Below, one piece after another: positions 13,990-64,000 of a stretch of DNA of 64,000 bases. This DNA is from Pelomyxa schiedti (Eukaryota > Protista > Evosea). Position 1 is the first letter of the stretch. Every line of letters starts with the position of its first letter. Made by a program: the position numbers and the translations under genes. The notes under the pieces were generated by a model, which was given only the letters and a program-made list of their open reading frames with translations, searched no databases and was not told the origin of the DNA. The stretch spans positions 30,965-94,964 of the forward strand of contig JAHLWZ010000151.1 of NCBI GenBank assembly GCA_020536535.1. The letters run 5' to 3'.

Positions 13990-14089
13990 NNNNNNNNNNN
14001 NNNNNNNNNNNNNNNNNNNNNNNNNNNNNNNNNNNNNNNNNNNNNNNNNNNNNNNNNNNNNNNNNNNNNNNNNNNNNNNNNNNNNNNNN
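13990..14089. other. Scaffold gap (100 N)
   Basis: Run of N. Confidence 1.
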
Positions 14090-34614: not shown

Positions 34615-34714
34615 NNNNNNNNNNNNNNNNNNNNNNNNNNNNNNNNNNNNNNNNNNNNNNNNNNNNNNNNNNNNNNNNNNNNNNNNNNNNNNNNNNNNNN
34701 NNNNNNNNNNNNNN
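34615..34714. other. Scaffold gap (100 N) flanked by an identical 121-bp overlap
   Basis: 34494-34614 is identical to 34715-34835. Confidence 0.95.
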
Positions 34715-51400: not shown

Positions 51401-54400
51401 ATGGCGCGCACAGGGCAGCAAAACACTGACAGGTGGTGCTCTTCTCCAACATAAATTTTGGAGCGCGGGGTGCAGCGATTTTTTTTATCATCAACTGTTT
51501 TCTTCTTAATTCTGGCGTAGGTTCCTTGTTGCGGTCACAGGCACAAGCTGCCGATTTCCGACTGCGATAAATATCGACGAGTACTACAACCTCTTGCACA
51601 GCTGCGCCGACGCCGTCGGAGTTGTTCCGGCTCACAAGCTGAACACCGCGGTACACTGCGTTTCAGGAAAGATCAAGACCCCCTGTGCCGGAGCATTGAA
51701 TGACCCCCTTACGCACTGCGATCCCGCTTTCTTTGGCTTGCTGTCTCGCGAGGCCTCGTTCCTGAGCCCGGTCCAGCACCAACTGATGCAGATCTCCTGC
51801 GAGGCACTGGCCGATGCCGGCGAGCCTTTCACCGTCGTACCGCCCGGCGCCAGCTCCGACAACGAGGGTCCCGGCAAGTACGTCGGCGTTTTCGTCGCAA
51901 GCTTCGGGATGGACTGGCCCGTGATCCTCATGACGACGGAGGCTGACATATCTCCATACACTGCGAACGGTGCAGCCCTGACCATGCTGAGCAACAGGCT
52001 GTCGTGGTTCTTCGACTTCAAGGGGCCCAGTGTCACCGTCGACACTGCCTGCAGCGGCTCGCTGGTTGCATTGCATTTCGCATATACGAGCTTAAGAGAC
52101 GGCGACTGCGACGCGGCCTTGGTCGCCGCTTCCAATTTGATCTTACTGCCCCAATTTTCTCTTTCTGTATCTCGAGCGGGGATGACTACGCCCTCTGGAA
52201 GGTGTCACACGTTTGGTTCCAATGCGGACGGCTATGTTCGTGCAGAAGGAACCTCTGCCTTGTTTTTGAAAGTATGTTTGAAAAATTGTACAAGCATTCA
52301 TTGATTTGTGTTTTCCTCCCTTTGAAAACAAAAATTTTCTAGCCTCTGGCTGATGCAGAGGCCAATGGTGATCATATCTACTGCGTGATATCTGGCACAG
52401 CCACCAATCACGACGGAAGCAAGCAGTTTATCAATCGGCCATCAACCAGTGGTCAGGTGCCCGTTGTGCAGCGAGCTCTGACAGTGGCACAAGTAGATCC
52501 AAAGGACGTGACATATGTTGAGGCTCATGGAACGGGAACTCCAGTGGGTGATCCAATCGAGGTGGAAACCCTGAGGAGAGTTTTCAGTGAGGAGGTGACT
52601 GGAACAAGAGGTCCTTGCTTTATTGGTTCCGTAAAAGCGAACATTGGGCACTCTGAGGCAGTTGCTGGGTTGGCGAGTCTCACCAAAGTCATTCTTATGT
52701 TACAGGTTTACACTTCCATGAGATTTACTTATTACTCACACTCGTTTAGCACGATGAAATTTTCCCCCAGATGACCGTGCCTATTAATACCCACATTCAC
52801 TTTGGAAGCCTATCTGTCTCCTGGAAAGGACAGCAGTGGAGTAAGATCACCAAAAAAAGGATTGCTGTTGCCAATTCATTTGGCTTTGGAGGCAGCAATG
52901 CGACCGTCGTCGTTGAGGAGTACCACACAACTCCACGCCCTGATTATGGCCTCGTAGAAAAACCGTTGTTTGTCCCCCCTGAAGAGAGCGTTGGTGGAAA
53001 ACCGTTCTATTTTTTGCCGCTGTCTGCCCACACCACGGCTGCGCTTACTGCATGTGCACAAAAGTGGGTTTCATTCCTATCGGAAAGTAAGTGCAACTTG
53101 TCAGAGATTATTTACAGTGCTGGAAAACGCACAAGTCATTTTTCCCAGCGCCTTGCACTTCTGGGGCGAACAGCACAAGATATTGCAAACGCCTTGGACA
53201 CCTTCATACAAAATCCCAAAGGACAACAGCAAGCAACACCCGAGTCATCGTGGAAGACTGGAACATCTCAACTTCTCACCACAAAGAACAAAATCTTATT
53301 TGTATTTTCAGGTCAGGGGCCTCAATGGTATGCAATGGGAAGGCAGATGTTCTCTGACGATCGTATATTCCACGACGCAATGACACAAGTCGATTCCATT
53401 GGGAGAAGAATCATGGGGTGGTCAGTGATCGAGGAACTTCACAAAGCTGAAAGTGACTCGCGTGTGAATCAGACACAGTTCGCACAAGTGTTGATTTTCG
53501 CTGTCCAAATTGGCCTGAATGCAGTGTGGCAGCACTGGGGAATTGTGCCCGAAGCTGTTGTTGGACACAGTGTTGGTGAAGTGGCTGCCGCCGTCGTGAG
53601 TGGCTACCTGACGCTCGAGGAAGGCGTTCTTGTCATCAGCGTGAGGTCTCGCCTGCAGCAGGCACTCAGTGGGAAAGGGAAAATGCTTGCCATCAACATG
53701 TCGTACACAGAGGCTTCTGAACTCATCTCCGACGTGGTTGGCGTTGATATTGCCTCGGTGAACAGCGCCGATTCCGTTGTTTTGGCTGGAGACCCTGCTG
53801 CTCTGACTTCTTTGGAGAAGACCCTCAAATCCAAGGGGAAGTTTGCAAAGTTTCTGTACGTTCAAAATGCGTTCCACAGTTACCAAACAGAACCGATCAA
53901 AGAGCAGTTGCTTCAGGAGCTGCAAGGACTCTCTCCTGCACCACATCCAAAAATCCCAATGATTTCAACGGTGTATGCCAAACCCCTTACTGAACCCCCA
54001 GGGCCAGACTACTGGTGGAAGAACGTGAGGTGCAGCGTTCTGTTTTACCCTTCTGTCCTGTATGCTCTTGAGGAGAAATTCAACGTTTTTGTGGAGTTGG
54101 CCAATCACCCAGTCCTCTCTGTGTACCTATCTGGCACTGCCACGTCCACACCAAAGAATCCCACTATCATCGTGCACTCGATTGAGCGAAACAAGCCCGA
54201 GAGAATGACGTTGCTGTCAAACCTTACCACGTTGTATGTGAACGGTATCACCAGCATGAACTGGTTCAACATCAGTAATTACCCCCTCGCTGCTCCTGCT
54301 GCAGAAGACAAGGCGAGGTGGGTCAAAATCCCCAATTTTCCAGTGTGGCAAAACACTGTTCCGTTGCACGAACCAAAGGCCTTCACAGCGTACAAGCAGG

Positions 54401-57400
54401 CATCTAATTTCACTCATAGCCTCCTGGGTTTGCGTGACGATAGCCCCGTACCTTCCTGGAGCAACGTTGTTGCACTCAATTTGTATCCTTGGCTCTCCGA
54501 TCACAGAGTGAGTGCTGGAGAGGACATTGTGGTACCAGGGGCGTTCTATTGCGAGCTGGCAACACTGGCTGCAAGGGAGATTTGGAGGACCAACCAGGTT
54601 CATGTGAAAAACTTGGGGTTCCACAGTCCCGTTGTATTGTCCCCTGACTCGTACGTGGATTTCAAGTGTGTGGTCACTGATTACCACCCGGGTGCCCAAC
54701 AAATGGGATTTGAGGTTCACACCAAAGCAGAGCAGGAGAAAACTTTTTCGAGGCGTTCTTCGTGCACAATCGAGCTTATAACTGAATCTACAGAAACTGC
54801 ACTGCCAGACGCAAAACAAGTTGATATTGACGCACTCAAGGCAACGTGCAAACTAATGAAAGGGCATTCAACAGTATACAAAGCTTTCTCTGACATGGGG
54901 TTAAACTACAAATCACTGTTCGCTCCAATTACCAAGATGTTTGTTGACAATTCTAACTACAACGAAGCACTGGGGCTGATGAAATTCAACAGCTCTGCAC
55001 TTGCCTCAGTTGCTCGAAACTCTGCAGTTCACCCAGCTGTTTTGGACGGTTGCTTCCAGTGCATTATTGGTGGGCTGTTAGGCCTACCGGACCTCCGAGG
55101 TTTAACTATACTCCTTCCTTCATCCCTTGGTGATATGCAAATACTCGCTCCACTCAGCACGGAGGGAACGAAAGATTTCCGTGTCAATATCAAAGAAAGC
55201 AGATTTACTCCAGAATACAGCGCAATCGAAGAGGAGCGGATGCGTTCAGCTCTTGAAGAAAACCAGCATTTAGTGCAGTTATGCAAGCATTATTCTGCGC
55301 TCTTTTGCCAGGCAGTCAGTGCAAACAGTGCAGACTGGAGTCCAAGCCATAGAAAATATCTCGATTGGCATAAAAAGCTTTCTGCTGATGTTGTTCCAAC
55401 GTCAGTGCCTCCTTCATATTCTTTCAAGGTGATGAACACTGAAGCGGAGCTGGCCCACAACGTGGGCAAGAAGTTGGTGGACCTTGTCAGCAATGCAGCT
55501 TCTCTTTTTGAAGATGAACACCTCCCCAAATTCTTCCTTGATTCTGTGTCATGTAATATCAACAAAGCCTCGGTTCCGGTTTTGGCACAGTTGTTGCAAT
55601 GTGGGAAGAGAATCAGGATTCTTGAAGTTGGTGGTGGCACTGGTGGTGCAACCAAACAACTTCTTCCTGTGTGTCAAGAAGCCTACAATCGCGGCTGCGA
55701 TATTGAATACATATTCACTGATGCCTCGCCATTCTTTGTCAACAAAGCGAAAGAGATGTTCTCTCACATACCCTTTGTCCAATGCAGCATACTTGATACC
55801 ACAAAACCCTTCCCTGAGGAGCTTCGAGATGTGGACGTAATGGTAGCTTTCGCTGTTGTGCACGTTGTTCCAGTCTTGGCGGACGCTCTCTCTCGAATGT
55901 TTGATGCTATGTCTCCTGGTGGTGTTCTTCTTCTCACAGAGCCAACCAAAAAAGACTATGTGTTCCTCAACTACCTGTTTGGCTTATTTGATCAGTGGTG
56001 GCAAAACGACCCAGCAGATAGAGCTCACGTGTGCATTGAGAGAGAAGAGTGGATTAAGCGTTTGAATAGTGCAGGTTTTTCAGATGTTGTGTCTGACACA
56101 GCTGGCTCCAAAGGGATAGAGCTCGCCTTTGCCTCGTTTATTGCACAAAAACCAATAACTGGAAGCCACACTTTTTCTTCATTTTGGTGCCATACAAAGA
56201 TAACCCATTTCGTTCCTCAGAAATCTATGATTGGTGAAGCTACTTTGATGGACATGTCTGGCAAGCCTCTAATTTCCGTCAAGAACCTGAACCTCAGTGC
56301 CATTTCCAATAAAGTAGCCAACGTATCTCTTGGGAAGGAAAAGTGGGTCGAGCTCCCTCTGGAAGTACCACCACAAGATTCTCCTGCTGAGGAGGCTCCT
56401 ATCAAAAAGGAAGGTGTGTTGATATTTCTTTCCTGCCGTAATGAATTCTGTGAGTCTCTCTTTGCCTCTTTGATATCTCGTTATGAGAATGTTCTGACTG
56501 TAGAGCGTGGATCAAAGACAACAGTGACCTCCGATAAAGACACCACTCTTTGTATTGATCCTTTGAACAAGGACCACTGGGCTCAGTTGGTCAAATCGAT
56601 TGGAAAACCTACGACTTGTGATGTAGTCAACACGTGGCCGGCATCATACTACACAACAAACGAACCAAGTGTGGACGAACTCAAACAAACTTCAGTTGAG
56701 AGTGCGATGTCCCTGGCGTACTTGTCAACAGCCCTGAGCCAAGCCGAATTGAACTGCAGACTGATCACTGTAACAAAGGGAGTCCATGATCCCAGGATGT
56801 CACGTTGTCACACACCAGCGGTTTCATTGTTTACATTGGGAGGTGTTGCTAGAGTTGCTTGTACAGAAACGTCACTTCGCTTGAAGGTGATTGACCTGGA
56901 TCCTTGTGATGAGACAAACAATTCTAAAACGCACGTTATTCAAGAGTTATTGCATGGGTGGAAAAATCCGGTTGAAACTGATGTTTGTATAAGCAACAAC
57001 AGACGATTTGTAGAGAGAGTGAACATTGGTGACTACAAGGAATCTCTTTCCCTTTTGGAATCTCCAGCTGAACCGGTTCAACCCGAGGATGAAGGGTGGG
57101 AAGTTCAATTTGAATCTGCAGGTTCTCTGCCTCACTTCGTGAGAATAAATGCTGGCCGTCCGCTAGCCCCAACCGAGGTCTGCACAGAGATGAACCACGT
57201 TGGTTTGAACTTAAAAGACTCGCTCATTTTCAAGGGACAGCTTGGTGTTGAAGAGGCCACAGGACAGTGGTACAAGTATGGAAAGCTTGGTTTGGAAGGA
57301 TCCGGTGTTGTCAAGCGTGTTGGAAGTGCCGTAACTCACGTGAAACCTGGGGATGAGGTCATTGTACTCACCCGTTTGGGAACTCTGTGTTCACACTTGA

Positions 57401-60400
57401 TTTGTAACTTCCATTCAGTGTTCCCCAAGCCAACAAAAGTCTCGGAGGAAGAAGCTTCCAGTTTGGGGGTTCCAGCCTATACAGCCGTTTACTCTCTTGT
57501 TCACTGTGCGAGGGCCTGCAAAGGGGAGTTTATTATGGTTCATTCTGCTTCAAGTGGAGTTGGTCTGGCTGTAATGCACCTTTCAAAATCCCTTGGATTG
57601 CAAGTGCTGGCCACAGCCTCTTCTGAACGTGAACTGCAGTACCTAAGAGAGGTCGTTGGATTGGAAAATGTAATTGCAGGGAAGGACCCAAAATTTTATC
57701 AGAAGGTCATGGAGCTAACTTCCGGCCGTGGTGTGGATATCGTTGTAAACACGTACAGCGGCACACTCGTTGAAAAGTCCCTTCAAATTCTTGCAAGAAA
57801 TGGGAGGTTTATTCAACTCGTTCCTGGGCAACAGCTTCCCAGAGGACTGCTCACTGAAAACCAGTCCATTCACACCATTGAGCTCTCAAGTATTCCTGAT
57901 GAAAAGCTATTTTATGAACTTGGACCCGACGTTATGAACACGATAGCCTCCTTGGCTGGCGTAGTACCCATCCAGTCTTACGACCTTGCACACATCCAGG
58001 AAGCGTTTGATCAGTTGTCCAACCCAGAGAAAAGAGGCCAAGTCTCCATATCTATTAAGACACCCATTGAAAGGCTGGATATTCTCCCAAGCCACACTGG
58101 TACCAGCTGGTTGTGCAATGCAAACGCGTCTTACTTCGTTTCTGGTGGCTTGAATGGGTTTGGATTTGCAGTTGCTAAATGGTTGTTTTACCATGGCGCA
58201 CGTAATGTTGCCCTTGCTTCCCGTGATGGGAGACCAAAGACAAGCTCTGATAAGCACTCGATTGAGTGGCTGAAGTGTCACGGGTGCAAAGTGCTCTGTC
58301 TATCAATGGACGTGTGCAGCTACGATTCCGTTGCATCAGCATTCAAGGTGCTTGAGGCTGAAATGCCCCCAGTGGAAGGAGTGTACCACTGTGCTGCTTT
58401 GTACGGGGATTGCTCCCTGTATAACCTCACCTCGGAGAAGTTTTCACGTGTTTGTTTTCCAAAACTGGTTGGTGCTTGGAATTTGCACAAAGTTACACTC
58501 TCACATCCAGTCAAGCACTTTGTGATGTTTTCCTCTGTCTCTTCTCTGCTTGGCCGAGACGGACAAGCATCTTACGTTGCTGGAAACTATTTTATGGACA
58601 GATTCGTGCAATACAGGCACCATCTTGGATTGCCTGCCATTGCCATTCAATGGGGCGCAATTGGAGACACTGGAGTTTTGGCCACGTCTCCCTTGCCAGC
58701 AATGTCTCTTGCCGCTGATGGCATAAACCAGGTTTCTGCAACAGATTCTCTCGATTGCCTATATGGCATTCTTTCAACTAAAGAGTCGGATTCACCAATT
58801 TCTTTGTTCTCCGTTGAGATGACTAGCTTCTATCCAAGCAACAGAGCTACCCTTTCACTTGCCAGGTTTTCTGAAAATAAATTCATTGATGAAAATGCTC
58901 ACAAGGCAGTTTCTGGAGATGTTTCTGTGTTTTCCCTCCTGAAATCACGTGTGGCCAAGAGTCTGGGCATTGAGGAACAGACCATTGGAGAAGACATGGT
59001 TTTGGCGTCACAAGGCATAGACAGCCTTGTGGCAACTAGTTTACGCACCTGGATAATGTCTGAGCTTGGTGTTAGCATTTCACCGCTTAAATTGCTGAGT
59101 GGTGTATCAATCGGGGAGTTGGCCTCAGAAATAAGTGCCATGAGAGGTGAGCCTCCAGCGTCGACAGCAGGCCCTGCTGCCACTCCTGCAGCTGCGACAC
59201 CAACTAAACCAGCCCCCAGTGTTACGCCGGCTGCAACTGTGGAAAAACCTGCTGTTGTTGAACATTCTGCAGTTGCTACCAAGGCGCAACCACCAAAAGT
59301 ATTGTCCGAACTACCCTCGCCAAAACCTGAGAGCGTCGCATCTCTCACTACTGCAGTGTCTTCATCAGTGACTCAACTTGTGGGTAGCACTACCCAACAG
59401 CAGAAATCCAAGCGCATTGCAGTATTTGGTGGCTTCAGTCCTGACCCAGACATCAGAACTTGGCTCATTGGCAAGTTGAGAACGTTGTGCAACCTGTTCC
59501 CCTTGATAGACAAGTGGCTCTATGGCGCATCCTCTTCACTATGCATGTTAGTTGCCATCAACCACGAGGCACTGGACAGACTCCACTCCCAGCACCCTGT
59601 GCTGGATAAGTTTTTCCAATCAGGAGGTTCAGTTGATTTGTATTCATGGTAACTATACTCCCAACCTTTTTTTGTGTATGAATTACCTCTCATCTCCTCT
59701 CAGGGTACAGAACGAATCAAGTTGCCCCAGCAATGATGTTCTTTCCACAATGTTTATTGCTTCTCTGTGTACTTTTTACAATATTGCATGCTTTATTGCT
59801 TCCGCACTGTCAACTGGCGATGACGAGGATGATCCTGACGGAAATAACCGATTTATGGCGTACCTGCGATCTTTTGATATCTTGCTTGGGTATTCCTCAG
59901 GGCTGACCTCATGCATGGCTTTGAGCAGAGCAGGTCCGTGTGGTTATGTTTTTTTACCCTTAACCTAACTGCCTTTTTCAGATTCTCTAAAGAAGTTGCA
60001 ATTTATTTCCGCCGCTCTTGCTTGTGCTCAGCTCTTATGCTTTGCTGAATTGATCAATGAGTACATCAAGCAGTGGGGAAAAGATGTCTTCACTAAACCA
60101 TGCCTTGCAACGGTGACAGACTCTCCAGTTGCCATTCAGAAGGCTCTTCAATCCATCAATGCCGAATGCCCAAATGCTCCACTTCATGTCTGCATAGGGA
60201 TGGGTCCTAATTTTGCAGAAATCACAGGTTAGTTGGGTTCTGTTGTGGGAATGAGTAGGGGGAAAAAAATAAGATTCATATTCTAATGCACACATAGGTC
60301 ACCCAACAAGCATAGAGAAACTTAAAGAATTACTGCCTGAGCAGACTTCAACGTTGCCTGTCGTGTTTCCACTTCACAATCCGTATTACATCCATAAGCC

Positions 60401-63400
60401 AGTTGAAAGATTGTTGCACGATCTCCAGGCTTGTGGCTTTGACAAAGTATTGGGGCAAGTGCCAAACAATCCTCCAGTTATCAGCACAACCAAGCTGATT
60501 GATCTCTCTCACGTGTGCCTCCACCTTATACCCTAACCCTAACCTCATATCTCTTTTAGGAAGATTCCCTACCGCTTCTTAAACGTAACTTAAGAGATGG
60601 TGTGGAACTTTCATTCAATTGGCCGGACTGTGTCAAGTAAGTATCCATACAATAAGCTCTCTTCATAACATGAAAACAGAGCAGCGATTTCGCTTAAGGG
60701 GGGATGCACCGAAGTGAAGCTATTTGATTTCGGGCCAGCCGGAGTGGGATCTTTAACAAACCTGATTTGCTCTGGGTTTTCACTTAAATCTTCTATTGTA
60801 AACTGCATGACCGGGTTTGTTGGTCCCAAACCGAAAACAACACCAGCAATTCCACAGGCACCCCAACAAAAGGGCCAAGTCAGAAAGGACACACTTACAC
60901 CAGAGCAACAGATTGTCTACGAGTGGTGGTGTGAGGTACTAGCTGCACCCCCAGAGACAGTGGACGAGGACTTTTTCGAAGCTGGGGGAGACTCAGTTGC
61001 AGCAATCAAGTTTATCGCATGTGCAAGCAAGGGGGGCTGGAAGTTGGAAATCAAGGACTTGTTCCAGTGCAGAACCCTTCGGACTATAACAGAGCTCCTG
61101 CCATCACGAAAGGCCAGTAAGAGCACATCTATTGTGCAACAGCCACACGCAATGCAGAGGCCACCCAAAGTTCCACTTTCATACACACAGATGAGGCTCT
61201 TCTTTATCGATCAACTTGACCCCAACTCTGTTCAGTACAGCACCTGGGGTGCTCTTGTGTTGAAGGGAGCAGCACCCTCCACATCACTTCTCCAACAAGC
61301 AACTCTTGCAGCAGTGCAGAGGCACGAGTCTCTCAGAACTCTGTTTGTGATGAGTGATGGTGACGACAACCCCCACCAGTTGATCCTTCCACCTGAAGAG
61401 GCTCAAGGAGGATTTGAATTCACCGAGTTTGTTTACGATGGCCTTCAAGATGATGAACAACACAAGAAAGAACAGTGGGTCTTGAAGGGTTGTATGAAGG
61501 AGGTCCACAGACCTTTCAACCTCCAAACTGGCCCTCTGTTGAGGTTCTCTGTTTTCCGAGTGTCCAAGGAAGAGACCGTTTTGTTCGTGAATGCTCACCA
61601 CATCATTGTTGATGGGTGGTCTTTTGTTACTTTCGCCAAGGAAATTTCATACAACTACAACAGAGAGTTGGCACTTTCAAAACTCACCACGGAGACTGCA
61701 AAAACAACAATCCAACCCGCCTTGCTTCCACCCCCTCTACCAGCACTGCCCTTCCAGTACGCTGACTTTTCCCTGTGGCAAAGAGAACTGCTGCAGTCAA
61801 CCGAGCTCAAAGATGAGCAGCTGTCGTACTGGAAGAAAGAGTTGGAATGTGCACCAGAAGTATGTGAGCTTCCACTTGACCGACCCAGAGGAACACATCG
61901 CACCTATGCAGCAGGCACCCACACACACATTATTGCACCTGCTCTCTTTGAAGAACTTTGCTCGGTTGGACACACTTGCTGTGATGCCACACCATTCATG
62001 ACAGTTCTGTCCATGTTTCTTCTTTTGCTTCATCTCCACACCCCACGCCACCAAGCACCTTCAGCAGCGGAAGAAGTGGTAGGGTGTGACGTCGTTGTGG
62101 GGATTCCAACAGCAAACCGGCACTACCCCGGAGTGGAGTCTCTCATCGGTTTCTTTGCCAACACCCTTGCCATCAGGCTCAGGATAACCGAGGACAAAGA
62201 CCTCGAGTCTGTGCTTAAACAAGTCAAAGAAAAGGTTTTGGCAGCCCAAGGAGCTCAAGACATCCCCTTCGACTGGGTTGTTGAGGCAATTGGAGTTGGC
62301 CGCAAACTCAACACACAGCCACTTGTGCAAGTGATGTTCATCATGGACGACTGGGACGTAGGCAATCCAAACAATTTCTCTTTGGAAGGAATCCAGGCTG
62401 CAAATCAGTTGAGTGGACTGCAAGCGCCAGTCACCAAGTTCGACTTGACGTTGCACTGTTACGTTGCAAACAAGGAGCTTCACATGGAGTTCGAGTACGC
62501 CAAAGATATCTTGGACGACTCCACCATCCAAAGGATGGGTGCCAACCTGGAAGCATTGATGAAATCAGTGGCCAAGGCCCCATCTCAAGGCATCACAAAG
62601 ATGCTCCCCATCTCAGTTGGTGAGATTCAGCAGCTGGAGCAGTGGAACGCGACCGAGAAGGACATCAGAAGAGGGGGAGTGGCAGTTCACCACCTGTTTG
62701 AAGAAAAGGTTGCAGAGAGACCGAAGGCGACAGCACTCAAGTTCATGGACTCCACGGTGACGTACGAGCAGCTGAACAGCAGGGCGAACCAACTGGCACA
62801 CCACCTCATCGCAACGGGAAAGGTCGGGCCCGGCATCTTCGTGCCGATTGTCGCGGAGAGGTCGATCGAGATGTACGTTGCGGTATACGCAGTTCTCAAG
62901 GCGGGCTCTGCATACATCCCCCTCGACCCTGAATCACCGAGCGACCGCCTGTCGAGCGTCTTTGCCGACTCGCAGCCCCCGTTCGTCCTCCTGTCGAAGA
63001 AATCTCTCTCCAAGTGCCTCCCAAGCGGGTCTCCGCCCACCATCTCGGTTCTCGAAGATTCCAACCTTTGGGAGAGCCAGCCCACGTGCAACCCACCACA
63101 CGCGATCAAGACGGGGCAAGAACCGATTTACGCGATCCTCACTTCTGGCTCGACTGGAAAGCCGAAGTTGGCTGTGAACAACCACATTGGAGCAGTGAAC
63201 CACGGACTGTGGCTCACACAAAAGTTCGGAGTCACATCGGATTCCCGATTCCTCGTCAAGGCACCATTTTACTTCGATGCCTCGGTGGCCGACATTTTCT
63301 TCGTGCTCATTGCCGGTGCATGTGGAGTCCTGTGCCCTCTCGGCTCCGAGATGGATCCTGAGGCTCTCTTGAATATCGTTTCCTCGGAGAAGATCACTTG

Positions 63401-64000
63401 GATCTTCTTTGTTCCGGCGGTTCTGAAAGAGTTCATCAGCGTTGCTCGCTCGAATCCCAACACCAGACAGATGACAACCTCCTTGAAGCTCGTTTATTCG
63501 GGAGGAGACGCTCTCCAGTGGGAAGAAGTGGTCAGATTCGTTGACACGTTTGGTCCGCAGGTCCAGCTGTTCAACGTGTATGGTCCGTCTGAGGCCTCCT
63601 GCGGAACAACCTCGTTCGATTGCACCGAGGCGCTTCCCAGCAGGAACACGCTTTACTCATCCAGCCCTGTTGTTCCACTCGGAAGACCGATCGACAACGT
63701 GACCGTTTTCGTGCTCGACAGGAACCTGAAGCCGGTTCCAGTTGGTGTTGTTGGTGAGATTTACATCGGAGGAATCTCGGTGGGGATGGGATACATGAAC
63801 AGAGACGATCTCAACGCGAAGCACTTTGTCTCTTCCCCCCCAACGCTCTGCGGCGGAAAGCTTTACAGAACTGGTGACCTCGGCAGGTTCCTGCAGAACG
63901 GCGAGATTTCCTTTGTTGGAAGGGCCGACTTCCAAGTCAAGCTCCGCGGCCTGAGGGTCGAGCTCGGTGAGATTGAAGAGTGTTTCCGATCGAACCCCTT
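51401..64000 (+). CDS. Hybrid type I PKS-NRPS megasynthase (KS-AT-DH/MT-ER-KR-ACP-AT-PCP-C-A...), 3' end beyond the window
   Basis: ATG at 51401. Eight GT-AG introns (51433-51520, 52272-52342, 52706-52749, 59649-59703, 59934-59981, 60228-60297, 60513-60559, 60637-60679) restore one frame. KS DTACS/HGTGT/NIGHSE; AT GHSVG/AFHS; DH DHRV..P/HPAVLD; MT LEVGGGTG; KR SYVAGN; ACP GIDSL; PCP GGDSV; C HHIIVDG; A TSGSTGKPK/YGPSE/YRTGDL/GRADFQVK. Confidence 0.95.
59410..60770 (+). other. Internal acyltransferase domain resembling the fungal FAS beta-subunit acetyltransferase (starter AT)
   Basis: AVFGG, DLYSWVQNESSCPSNDVLS, GYSSG (GxSxG), ITGHPTSI, LPVVFPLHN, NWP and LFDFGPAG occur in the same order as the FAS1 AT motifs (FGGQG, GHSQG, VSGPP, FLPVxxPFHS, LDFGPGG). 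Confidence 0.75.
60680..64000 (+). other. Final visible exon encoding NRPS module PCP-C-A (not in the ORF track; no stop before the window end)
   Basis: In-frame DFFEAGGDS (60969), PLSYTQMRLFF, RHESLRT, HHIIVDGWS (61596), QYADFSLWQR, LIGFFANTL, TYEQLNSRANQLA, TSGSTG (63141). Confidence 0.93.

Follow-up and report, generated by a model that had tools for sequence, protein, structure and literature searches.

A gene at the end of a 64,000-nucleotide stretch of the Pelomyxa schiedti genome (contig JAHLWZ010000151.1, positions 30,965 to 94,964 of the forward strand; this whole stretch is referred to below as the window) encodes a polyketide synthase (PKS) continued by a non-ribosomal peptide synthetase (NRPS), with an acyltransferase and an extra carrier lying at the junction of the two. 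The profile, fold and motifs of the junction domain support its assignment to acyltransferases (AT) of the fungal fatty acid synthase (FAS) or non-reducing PKS (NR-PKS) starter (SAT) type. With a confidence somewhat above even, this domain is proposed to act as an in-cis acyl relay, in which the chain would pass from the acyl carrier protein (ACP) of the PKS to Ser2746 of the SAT domain, then to the extra carrier T0, and finally to the condensation (C) domain; the direction of transfer and the substrates are those that we infer. The host, P. schiedti, is an anaerobic multinucleate amoebozoan.

Identity and fold of the junction acyltransferase

The gene lies on the plus strand, as do all its features given below, and starts at about 51.5 kb; it continues to position 64,000, where both the window and the scaffold end. 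It corresponds to the NCBI protein P0001 ("type I polyketide synthase [Pelomyxa schiedti]", 4010 aa) and is truncated by the scaffold end. According to the Pfam scan, the domain order of P0001 is KS-AT-DH-MT-ER-KR-ACP, a Pro/Ala-rich linker, a SAT-family acyltransferase, a peptidyl carrier protein (PCP) and C-A. The translation of the spliced exon model was identical to P0001 and contained no stop; the two differ only over the final four residues of the comparison, at the point near the scaffold end where the annotation of P0001 stops.

The SAT-family domain, modelled with a FabD-like fold, occupies positions 59401–60791 (P0001 residues 2600–2975, ~375 aa) according to Pfam, the structure model and RNA data. 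It contains the N-terminal strand RIAVFGG (59413–59433), the GYSSG motif (59888–59902) with the predicted nucleophile Ser2746 (codon 59894–59896), the PLHNPYY motif (60369–60389, part of VVFPLHNPYY) with the predicted catalytic base His2867 (codon 60375–60377), and FDFGP (60723–60737); the assignment of both residues is based on motif and conservation in paralogues. By coordinate mapping, a linker of 41 aa (60792–60914) leads to T0, a PCP-type carrier recognized by the Pfam PP-binding profile (60915–61100; P0001 3017–3078) with the motif GGDSV at 60984–60998 (Ser3043 codon 60993–60995). The C domain follows (61170–62636; P0001 3102–3590; Pfam Condensation, 235 bits), and its HHIIVDG motif (61596–61616) is intact. 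All the elements named in the initial annotation of this region (GYSSG, PLHN, DFGP, a PCP-type carrier behind the acyltransferase and a C domain after it) were found in place and in one spliced reading frame.

The Pfam SAT profile (PF16073) matched residues 2684–2867 of P0001 with a score of 25.5 bits, above the gathering cut-off of 22.8. Scores in three paralogous proteins were 29.1, 36.2 and 37.5 bits, and the genomic copy on contig C424 reached 45.7 bits. Pfam scans of the junction exon by exon gave no match, the pieces being too short, and a phmmer search of the domain against PDB sequences returned noise only. Language-model features grouped the domain with SAT and FAS-AT clusters (0.97). 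As for the malonyl-CoA:ACP transacylases (PF00698), which carry GHSxG, the junction domain has GYSSG instead, and the sole PF00698 stretch of P0001 covers residues 566–882.

A single-sequence AlphaFold model of the domain had a pLDDT of 38.6 and was replaced by an AlphaFold2 model built on a 31-row paralogue alignment (pLDDT 68, pTM 0.69). Analysis of the latter in Foldseek gave FAS-beta with E 2e-7 and 67 matches at E<=0.001; among the 50 matches listed of these 67, all were acyltransferase-containing synthases or FabD. According to VIA-align, the closest structure was the acetyltransferase of fungal FAS-beta (residues about 156–502, about 280 residues aligned, Z 17–18.1), followed by the N-terminal AT of M. 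tuberculosis FAS-I (Z 15.7), the SAT domains of PksA (Z 15.6), CTB1 (Z 14.6–15.1) and CazM (Z 14.1), and FabD (Z about 14); the FAS-beta match with Z 18.1 spans residues 156–487. A shape search in the Atlas gave a similar picture (TM 0.60–0.61 to SAT clusters). In the alignment of a five-member family profile, GYSxG stands over the Cys of PksA GFCMG, and the His stands over those of PksA "PICLPAHN" and FAS-beta "LPITAPFHSPYL".

The initial annotation had proposed a fungal FAS-like starter acyltransferase with a candidate Ser/His pair. The FAS-like starter type is borne out by Pfam, Foldseek and VIA-align, all of which returned SAT or FAS AT matches; an AT fold was modelled, the catalytic residues are intact, and the pair is conserved in paralogues and aligned with the catalytic Cys/His of PksA. 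The attribute "fungal" applies to the nearest structural relatives only, whereas the host is amoebozoan and the KS-AT and C domains best match bacterial-type entries. On the basis of the intact motifs and the fold, the domain is predicted to be a catalytically competent starter-unit:carrier transacylase.

Exon structure and expression of the junction

In the exon model, the SAT domain is encoded by six exon parts (59401–59648, 59704–59933, 59982–60227, 60298–60512, 60560–60636 and 60680–60791) separated by five GT-AG introns of 43–70 nt (59649–59703, 59934–59981, 60228–60297, 60513–60559 and 60637–60679). The large exon 52771–59648 (6.9 kb) encodes the ACP, the linker and the first SAT part, and the final exon starts at 60680. 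The linker between ACP and SAT (59134–59400, 89 aa, 62% P/A/S/T) continues the open frame of the ACP. Since a single open frame covers the ACP, the linker and the first SAT exon, with neither a stop nor a Met in between, the fusion of the PKS with the SAT domain is considered real. The alternative that two genes were fused by an annotation artefact was rejected on the same absence of a stop or Met between ACP and SAT, the frame of the paralogue on contig C753 being equally continuous.

Parts of the stretch are contained in four single-cell RNA-seq runs of one study. Exact GT..AG joints were found in RNA contigs at four of the five introns (59648/59704, 59933/59982, 60512/60560 and 60636/60680). 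One RNA contig begins in the linker (59341), upstream of SAT, and spans intron 1; another begins at 60381, spans introns 4 and 5, and continues through the PCP into the C domain. Spliced RNA thus joins the SAT domain both to the ACP-encoding exon (from the linker) and to the PCP/C exon, in agreement with the common mRNA that the initial annotation presupposed. Intron 3 is without RNA coverage and is backed by the reading frame, the NCBI model and the same exon boundary in paralogues.

Intron 1 is retained in one RNA contig (run X4, 59599–59775). In one contig of run X1, two bases deviate from the genome, 60854 (A>G) and 60920 (C>T); they may be allelic or paralogue-derived. The spread of introns is very uneven: the SAT region, 1.4 kb long, has five, and the PKS exon (6.9 kb) and the NRPS exon (at least 3.3 kb) have none. 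Paralogues (loci L023–L038) show this pattern too, with conserved intron positions.

Paralogues of the SAT domain in Pelomyxa

When 1.84 billion representative proteins were searched exhaustively with phmmer, the SAT domain had four relatives, all of them from Pelomyxa schiedti. Word-index homology searches returned P0001 itself or the Pelomyxa paralogue P0005 only, and pattern scans of contigs from metagenomes and from the genomes of bacteria and archaea detected no SAT-subfamily relatives. Within the genome, matches to the SAT domain are located on about 15 contigs, and about ten diverged paralogous loci share the motifs of the nucleophile and the His. Contamination by fungal DNA was set aside, given the lack of relatives among the 1.84 billion proteins, the ~15 contigs with conserved introns and the single-cell RNA; a contaminant from an unsequenced eukaryote appears unlikely as the source.

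Copies that are 25–50% identical share the motifs RRIAxxxGF, SFDxxxGYS[AS]G, LPVxEAFHxPFYQ and FDFGPxGxG, and the exon boundaries of paralogues fall at the same profile positions. The His is invariant among paralogues. The nucleophile motif is GYS[AS]G in all copies but that on contig C259 (L028:8689–8967; P0003), which has GYCGG, that is, the Cys nucleophile of classical NR-PKS SATs.

These data bear on the reading in which the domain would be a remnant, degenerate or with a structural or docking role, with the C domain taking the chain from the ACP or from a T0 loaded in another way. The strong divergence of the sequence, the restriction of its relatives to one species, the marginal Pfam score (25.5 bits) and the atypical surroundings of the His in the fused copies are consistent with an inactive scaffold. 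However, the diverged paralogues retain the N-terminal strand, the nucleophile and His, and DFGP, intron positions are conserved, the open frame is intact, and the domain is transcribed and spliced, so that loss of activity is considered improbable.

The SAT domain occurs in three contexts. Fusion to a PKS, after the ACP, was found at two loci, namely in the P0001 gene and on C753; the latter paralogue is 74% identical and has a continuous frame PKS-ACP-SAT-T-C-A-T-C-A-T followed by a stop. At no fewer than five loci, the domain is N-terminal in an NRPS that has no PKS, in the order SAT-T-C-A. Such an order without upstream PKS homology was found on C150 (P0002) and C1291/C1593, where a Met lies 10–45 residues before the first SAT strand, as well as on C259 (P0003) and C424, where the complete order is SAT-T-C-A-T-C-A-T-R. 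The short contigs C1508 and C1674 contain SAT-T-C-A, and C1840 contains SAT only. The third context is the stand-alone domain found at one locus, C573 (L022:7088–8469; P0006, P0004), which encodes 436 aa with neither a carrier nor a C domain behind; its N-terminal motif (RRIAIAAGFAEDPDIRTW) is nearest to that of the PKS-fused copies.

As for the PKS part, its paralogues on C171 (54981–62855) and C291 (143987–151765) are 69–74% identical, and their homology ends exactly at the boundary of the ACP-linker and SAT. This indicates, by the Rosetta-stone logic, that split and fused forms both exist. The open frames on C171 and C291 seem to extend for several hundred codons past the ACP-linker. A further highly reducing PKS (HR-PKS) paralogue is located upstream of the window on the same scaffold, C151 (18125–20954, minus strand); it contains in-frame stops and may be a pseudogene. 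The KS-AT regions of the HR-PKS paralogues on C151, C171 and C291 are 64–84% identical.

Taken from sequence, the SAT-T pair looks like an NRPS loading unit. Since SAT is accompanied by a carrier and a C domain with or without an upstream PKS, its client would be T0 and the NRPS and not the PKS. Of the functions put forward in the initial annotation (hand-over of the polyketide from ACP to PCP, loading of an independent starter, priming of the PKS), the paralogue context favours the hand-over and disfavours priming, in which SAT would load a starter onto the upstream ACP and T0 would merely be a second carrier. Priming is the classical function of SAT domains, and the long flexible linker would allow the ACP to reach SAT; but the same SAT-T-C cassette stands at the head of at least five NRPS loci without a PKS, the close PKS paralogues on C171 and C291 show no SAT homology, and HR-PKSs usually prime themselves via their own AT. 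This role is regarded as the least probable of those considered.

A role in release or editing, with the domain acting as an acyl hydrolase or off-loading transferase that clears stalled chains or frees the product, also appears very improbable. Models for it are the malonyl/palmitoyl transferase of FAS and the acyl hydrolases of trans-AT PKSs, and enzymes with the AT fold are able to off-load chains to CoA or water; in addition, a T domain seems to come last both in this gene and in the C753 paralogue, with no release domain after it. Against this, the constant pairing of SAT with a directly following carrier and C domain indicates loading, and the C424 protein combines a front SAT-T with its own terminal R domain.

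Proposed acyl relay

In the proposed relay, a reduced and methylated polyketide would be completed on the PKS ACP, which is held by the 89-residue flexible linker. The chain would then be moved onto Ser2746 with the assistance of His2867, and from the serine it would be handed to the phosphopantetheine arm of T0. At its donor site, the C domain would receive the chain from T0 and condense it with the first amino acid; with two NRPS modules (C-A-T-C-A-T) following, the product would be an N-acyl dipeptide. The enzyme would in this case amount to a highly reducing PKS to whose end an NRPS, equipped with a SAT-T didomain for its own loading, has been fused. As SAT has to accept the chain, it would also be a gate on chain length and chain structure.

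SAT domains of NR-PKSs, which are N-terminal, are known to carry acyl chains from the ACP of a partner synthase (an HR-PKS or a FAS) to their own ACP. Because the fused ACP has no other visible off-loading partner and NR-PKS SATs accept chains of partner synthases, the relay is the most economical reading. Complex prediction for SAT with the upstream ACP gave scores of 0.11, 0.48 and 0.00 against a mark of 0.34, which speaks neither for nor against binding.

Several points weigh against the relay. When the five-member family profile was compared with solved sequences, FAS-beta of T. lanuginosus and PksA were at the top, with non-significant values (E 0.14 and 0.21). The model has a pLDDT below 50 at the nucleophile elbow (model residues 142–147) and at both termini, so that the geometry of the active site is unreadable. 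The His motif VVFPLHN of the two PKS-fused copies deviates from EAFHxPFYQ of the family. Furthermore, the FAS acetyltransferase, the nearest structural neighbour, loads acetyl from CoA and not from a carrier, and SATs in vitro also take acyl-CoA, so that the cis ACP need not be the sole donor.

The last two points agree with an independent loading of the starter, in which SAT would charge T0 with the acetyl or fatty acyl group of a soluble CoA ester, or with a chain from a foreign synthase's ACP, while the PKS product would exit by another route or go straight to the C domain. The paralogues of the SAT-T-C-A type, having no PKS, necessarily draw their acyl group from outside the protein, which is in line with this reading. 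On the other hand, the fused PKS ACP would then be left without a visible off-loading partner, there being no thioesterase (TE), R or second C domain adjoining; the one donor site that a C domain has would be filled by T0; and the fusion has been retained in two paralogues diverged by 26%. On balance, loading from an independent source is regarded as rather unlikely, and the in-cis relay is preferred.

The relay can be placed in a broader proposal, to which we give slightly less than even confidence. SAT-T may be a previously unrecognized, self-contained lipoinitiation module of NRPSs that relays a chain from carrier to carrier, from the ACP of an HR-PKS or FAS to the C domain, and also sets the chain length of the product. 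The relay would operate in trans in the PKS-less SAT-T-C-A proteins and in cis in the fusion, and the module would have arisen or diversified in the anaerobic amoeba when a FAS/SAT-like domain rich in introns was joined to PKS and NRPS parts of bacterial type.

Comparison with known systems

The SAT domains of fungal NR-PKSs (PksA, CTB1 and CazM) belong to the same Pfam family, PF16073, and share the FabD-like fold with the Pelomyxa domain (Z 14–15.6). Their GX(C/S)XG nucleophile and catalytic His are in register with those of the Pelomyxa domain, and the presumed job, moving the chain of an upstream reducing synthase to the next carrier, is common to both. In contrast, the SAT of NR-PKSs is N-terminal to KS-MAT-PT-ACP and feeds the KS and ACP of a PKS, whereas the Pelomyxa domain is internal, located between the ACP and PCP-C-A, and would feed the PCP and C domain of an NRPS. 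It also has Ser where SATs usually have Cys (with Cys in one paralogue), its sequence relation to them is marginal, and its host is an amoebozoan.

The FAS AT of fungal FAS-beta and of mycobacterial and corynebacterial FAS-I, which includes the best structural match, has the Ser nucleophile in common with the Pelomyxa domain. Both contain W-x-x-N-x-x-x-x-P-x-x-D/N-x-L, LPxxxxFHSPY and DFGP. The FAS AT primes the fatty-acid cycle by transferring acetyl from acetyl-CoA to the FAS ACP, whereas the Pelomyxa domain has no FAS context and is followed by PCP-C-A.

Carrier-to-carrier transfer of an acyl group through a covalent enzyme intermediate, the concept of the proposed relay, is common to VinK (ACP to ACP) and to the T-to-T shuttles CmaE and SyrC. 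Clusters of VinK type were found among the language-model neighbours of the SAT domain at ranks 26–30 (score 0.94). CmaE and SyrC have the alpha/beta-hydrolase fold. Unlike the Pelomyxa domain, all three are free-standing bacterial enzymes, and they are likened to it by concept and not by sequence.

In the model for emericellamide, the free acyltransferase EasC loads the first T domain of the NRPS EasA with the polyketide of the HR-PKS EasB, the T domain donates the polyketide to the first C domain, and the chain makes a detour as free acid and CoA ester via the CoA ligase EasD (PMC3901194). That system consists of separate proteins and a ligase, whereas in Pelomyxa there is one polypeptide and no ligase is visible; EasC is compared with the SAT domain by its role.

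Canonical PKS-NRPS hybrids (PsoA, TenS, and a LovB-like PKS with C-A-T-R) have KS-AT-DH-MT-ER-KR-ACP and NRPS module(s) in common with the Pelomyxa enzyme. Their C domain stands directly after the ACP and takes the chain from it, and a single module ends in R/DKC. In Pelomyxa, SAT and a second carrier lie between the ACP and the C domain, there are two modules, and no R/DKC was found.

As for the flanking parts, the best PDB matches of KS-AT were a putative PKS (7zma), CurL, a Dictyostelium PKS and the Pik/DEBS synthases; CurL and other bacterial-type PKSs gave E 2e-140, compared with 1e-99 for LovB and 3e-94 for PsoA. For the C domain, the top matches were teixobactin Txo1/2 and LgrA, with E 7e-59 for Txo2 and 6e-19 for PsoA. 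Judged by these matches, the flanking PKS and NRPS parts look bacterial in type. Together with the uneven spread of introns, the matches of KS-AT and C hint at a mosaic origin of the gene family.

Other domains of the gene and its 3′ end

The KS of the PKS is encoded at about 51520–52770 (P0001 14–390) in short exons upstream of the large exon, of which the highly reducing PKS part covers 52771–59133 according to Pfam and coordinate mapping. The Pfam matches in it are the AT (53299–54249; P0001 566–882), DH (54415–55167; 938–1188), C-MT (55585–56082; 1328–1493), ER (57169–58041; 1856–2146), KR (58126–58665; 2175–2354) and ACP (58936–59133; 2445–2510), the last having Ser2474 (codon 59023–59025) within GIDS. 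The adenylation domain of NRPS module 1 (62697–64000; P0001 3611–3976; Pfam AMP-binding) is truncated where the scaffold stops.

The last 1360 bases of the window (62641–64000), a segment of the A domain, are 100% identical to positions 1–1360 of C151. A 2.2-kb contig, C2062 (L036), starts with the last 121 bases of the window and ends with the first 121 bases of the repeat. It encodes A (C-terminal subdomain)-T-C, and C151:3–1892 (L037) encodes A-T followed by a stop. C2062 connects the repeat with itself, which would place the 3′ end of the gene (A-T-stop) at the start of the same scaffold. The repeat implies either that two modules have near-identical A domains and that the RNA-based scaffold is mis-ordered, or that the arrangement is tandem or circular. 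From C2062, C151:1–1892 and C753 we infer that the full enzyme would be KS-AT-DH-MT-ER-KR-ACP-SAT-T-C-A-T-C-A-T, with two NRPS modules. A search for a release domain (NAD_binding_4/R, Thioesterase) on C151 and C753 gave no match.

Two runs of exactly 100 N are present in the window, at 13990–14089 and 34615–34714. C151 must therefore have been scaffolded from three or more contigs, and the order of genes across the gaps is not assured.

Significance

No description of an ACP-SAT-PCP or SAT-T-C junction was found in the open-access literature searched, which agrees with the remark in the initial annotation that no precedent for this junction was known. Nor did the open-access literature searched yield any account of Pelomyxa genes for PKSs or NRPSs, and they are absent from the main text of the genome paper.

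The crossing of the chain from PKS to NRPS limits the engineering of hybrid natural products, and known hybrids rely on a matched interface of ACP and C domain. If true, a relay over a covalent intermediate (ACP to Ser-enzyme to PCP) would solve this crossing in another way, one that might be portable to other enzymes and could double as a checkpoint of chain length. As judged from sequence, the finding would extend the SAT-family enzymes to the loading of NRPSs. For Pelomyxa schiedti, an organism studied for its organelles and symbionts, it reveals that PKS, NRPS and hybrid genes form a sizeable family and are expressed.

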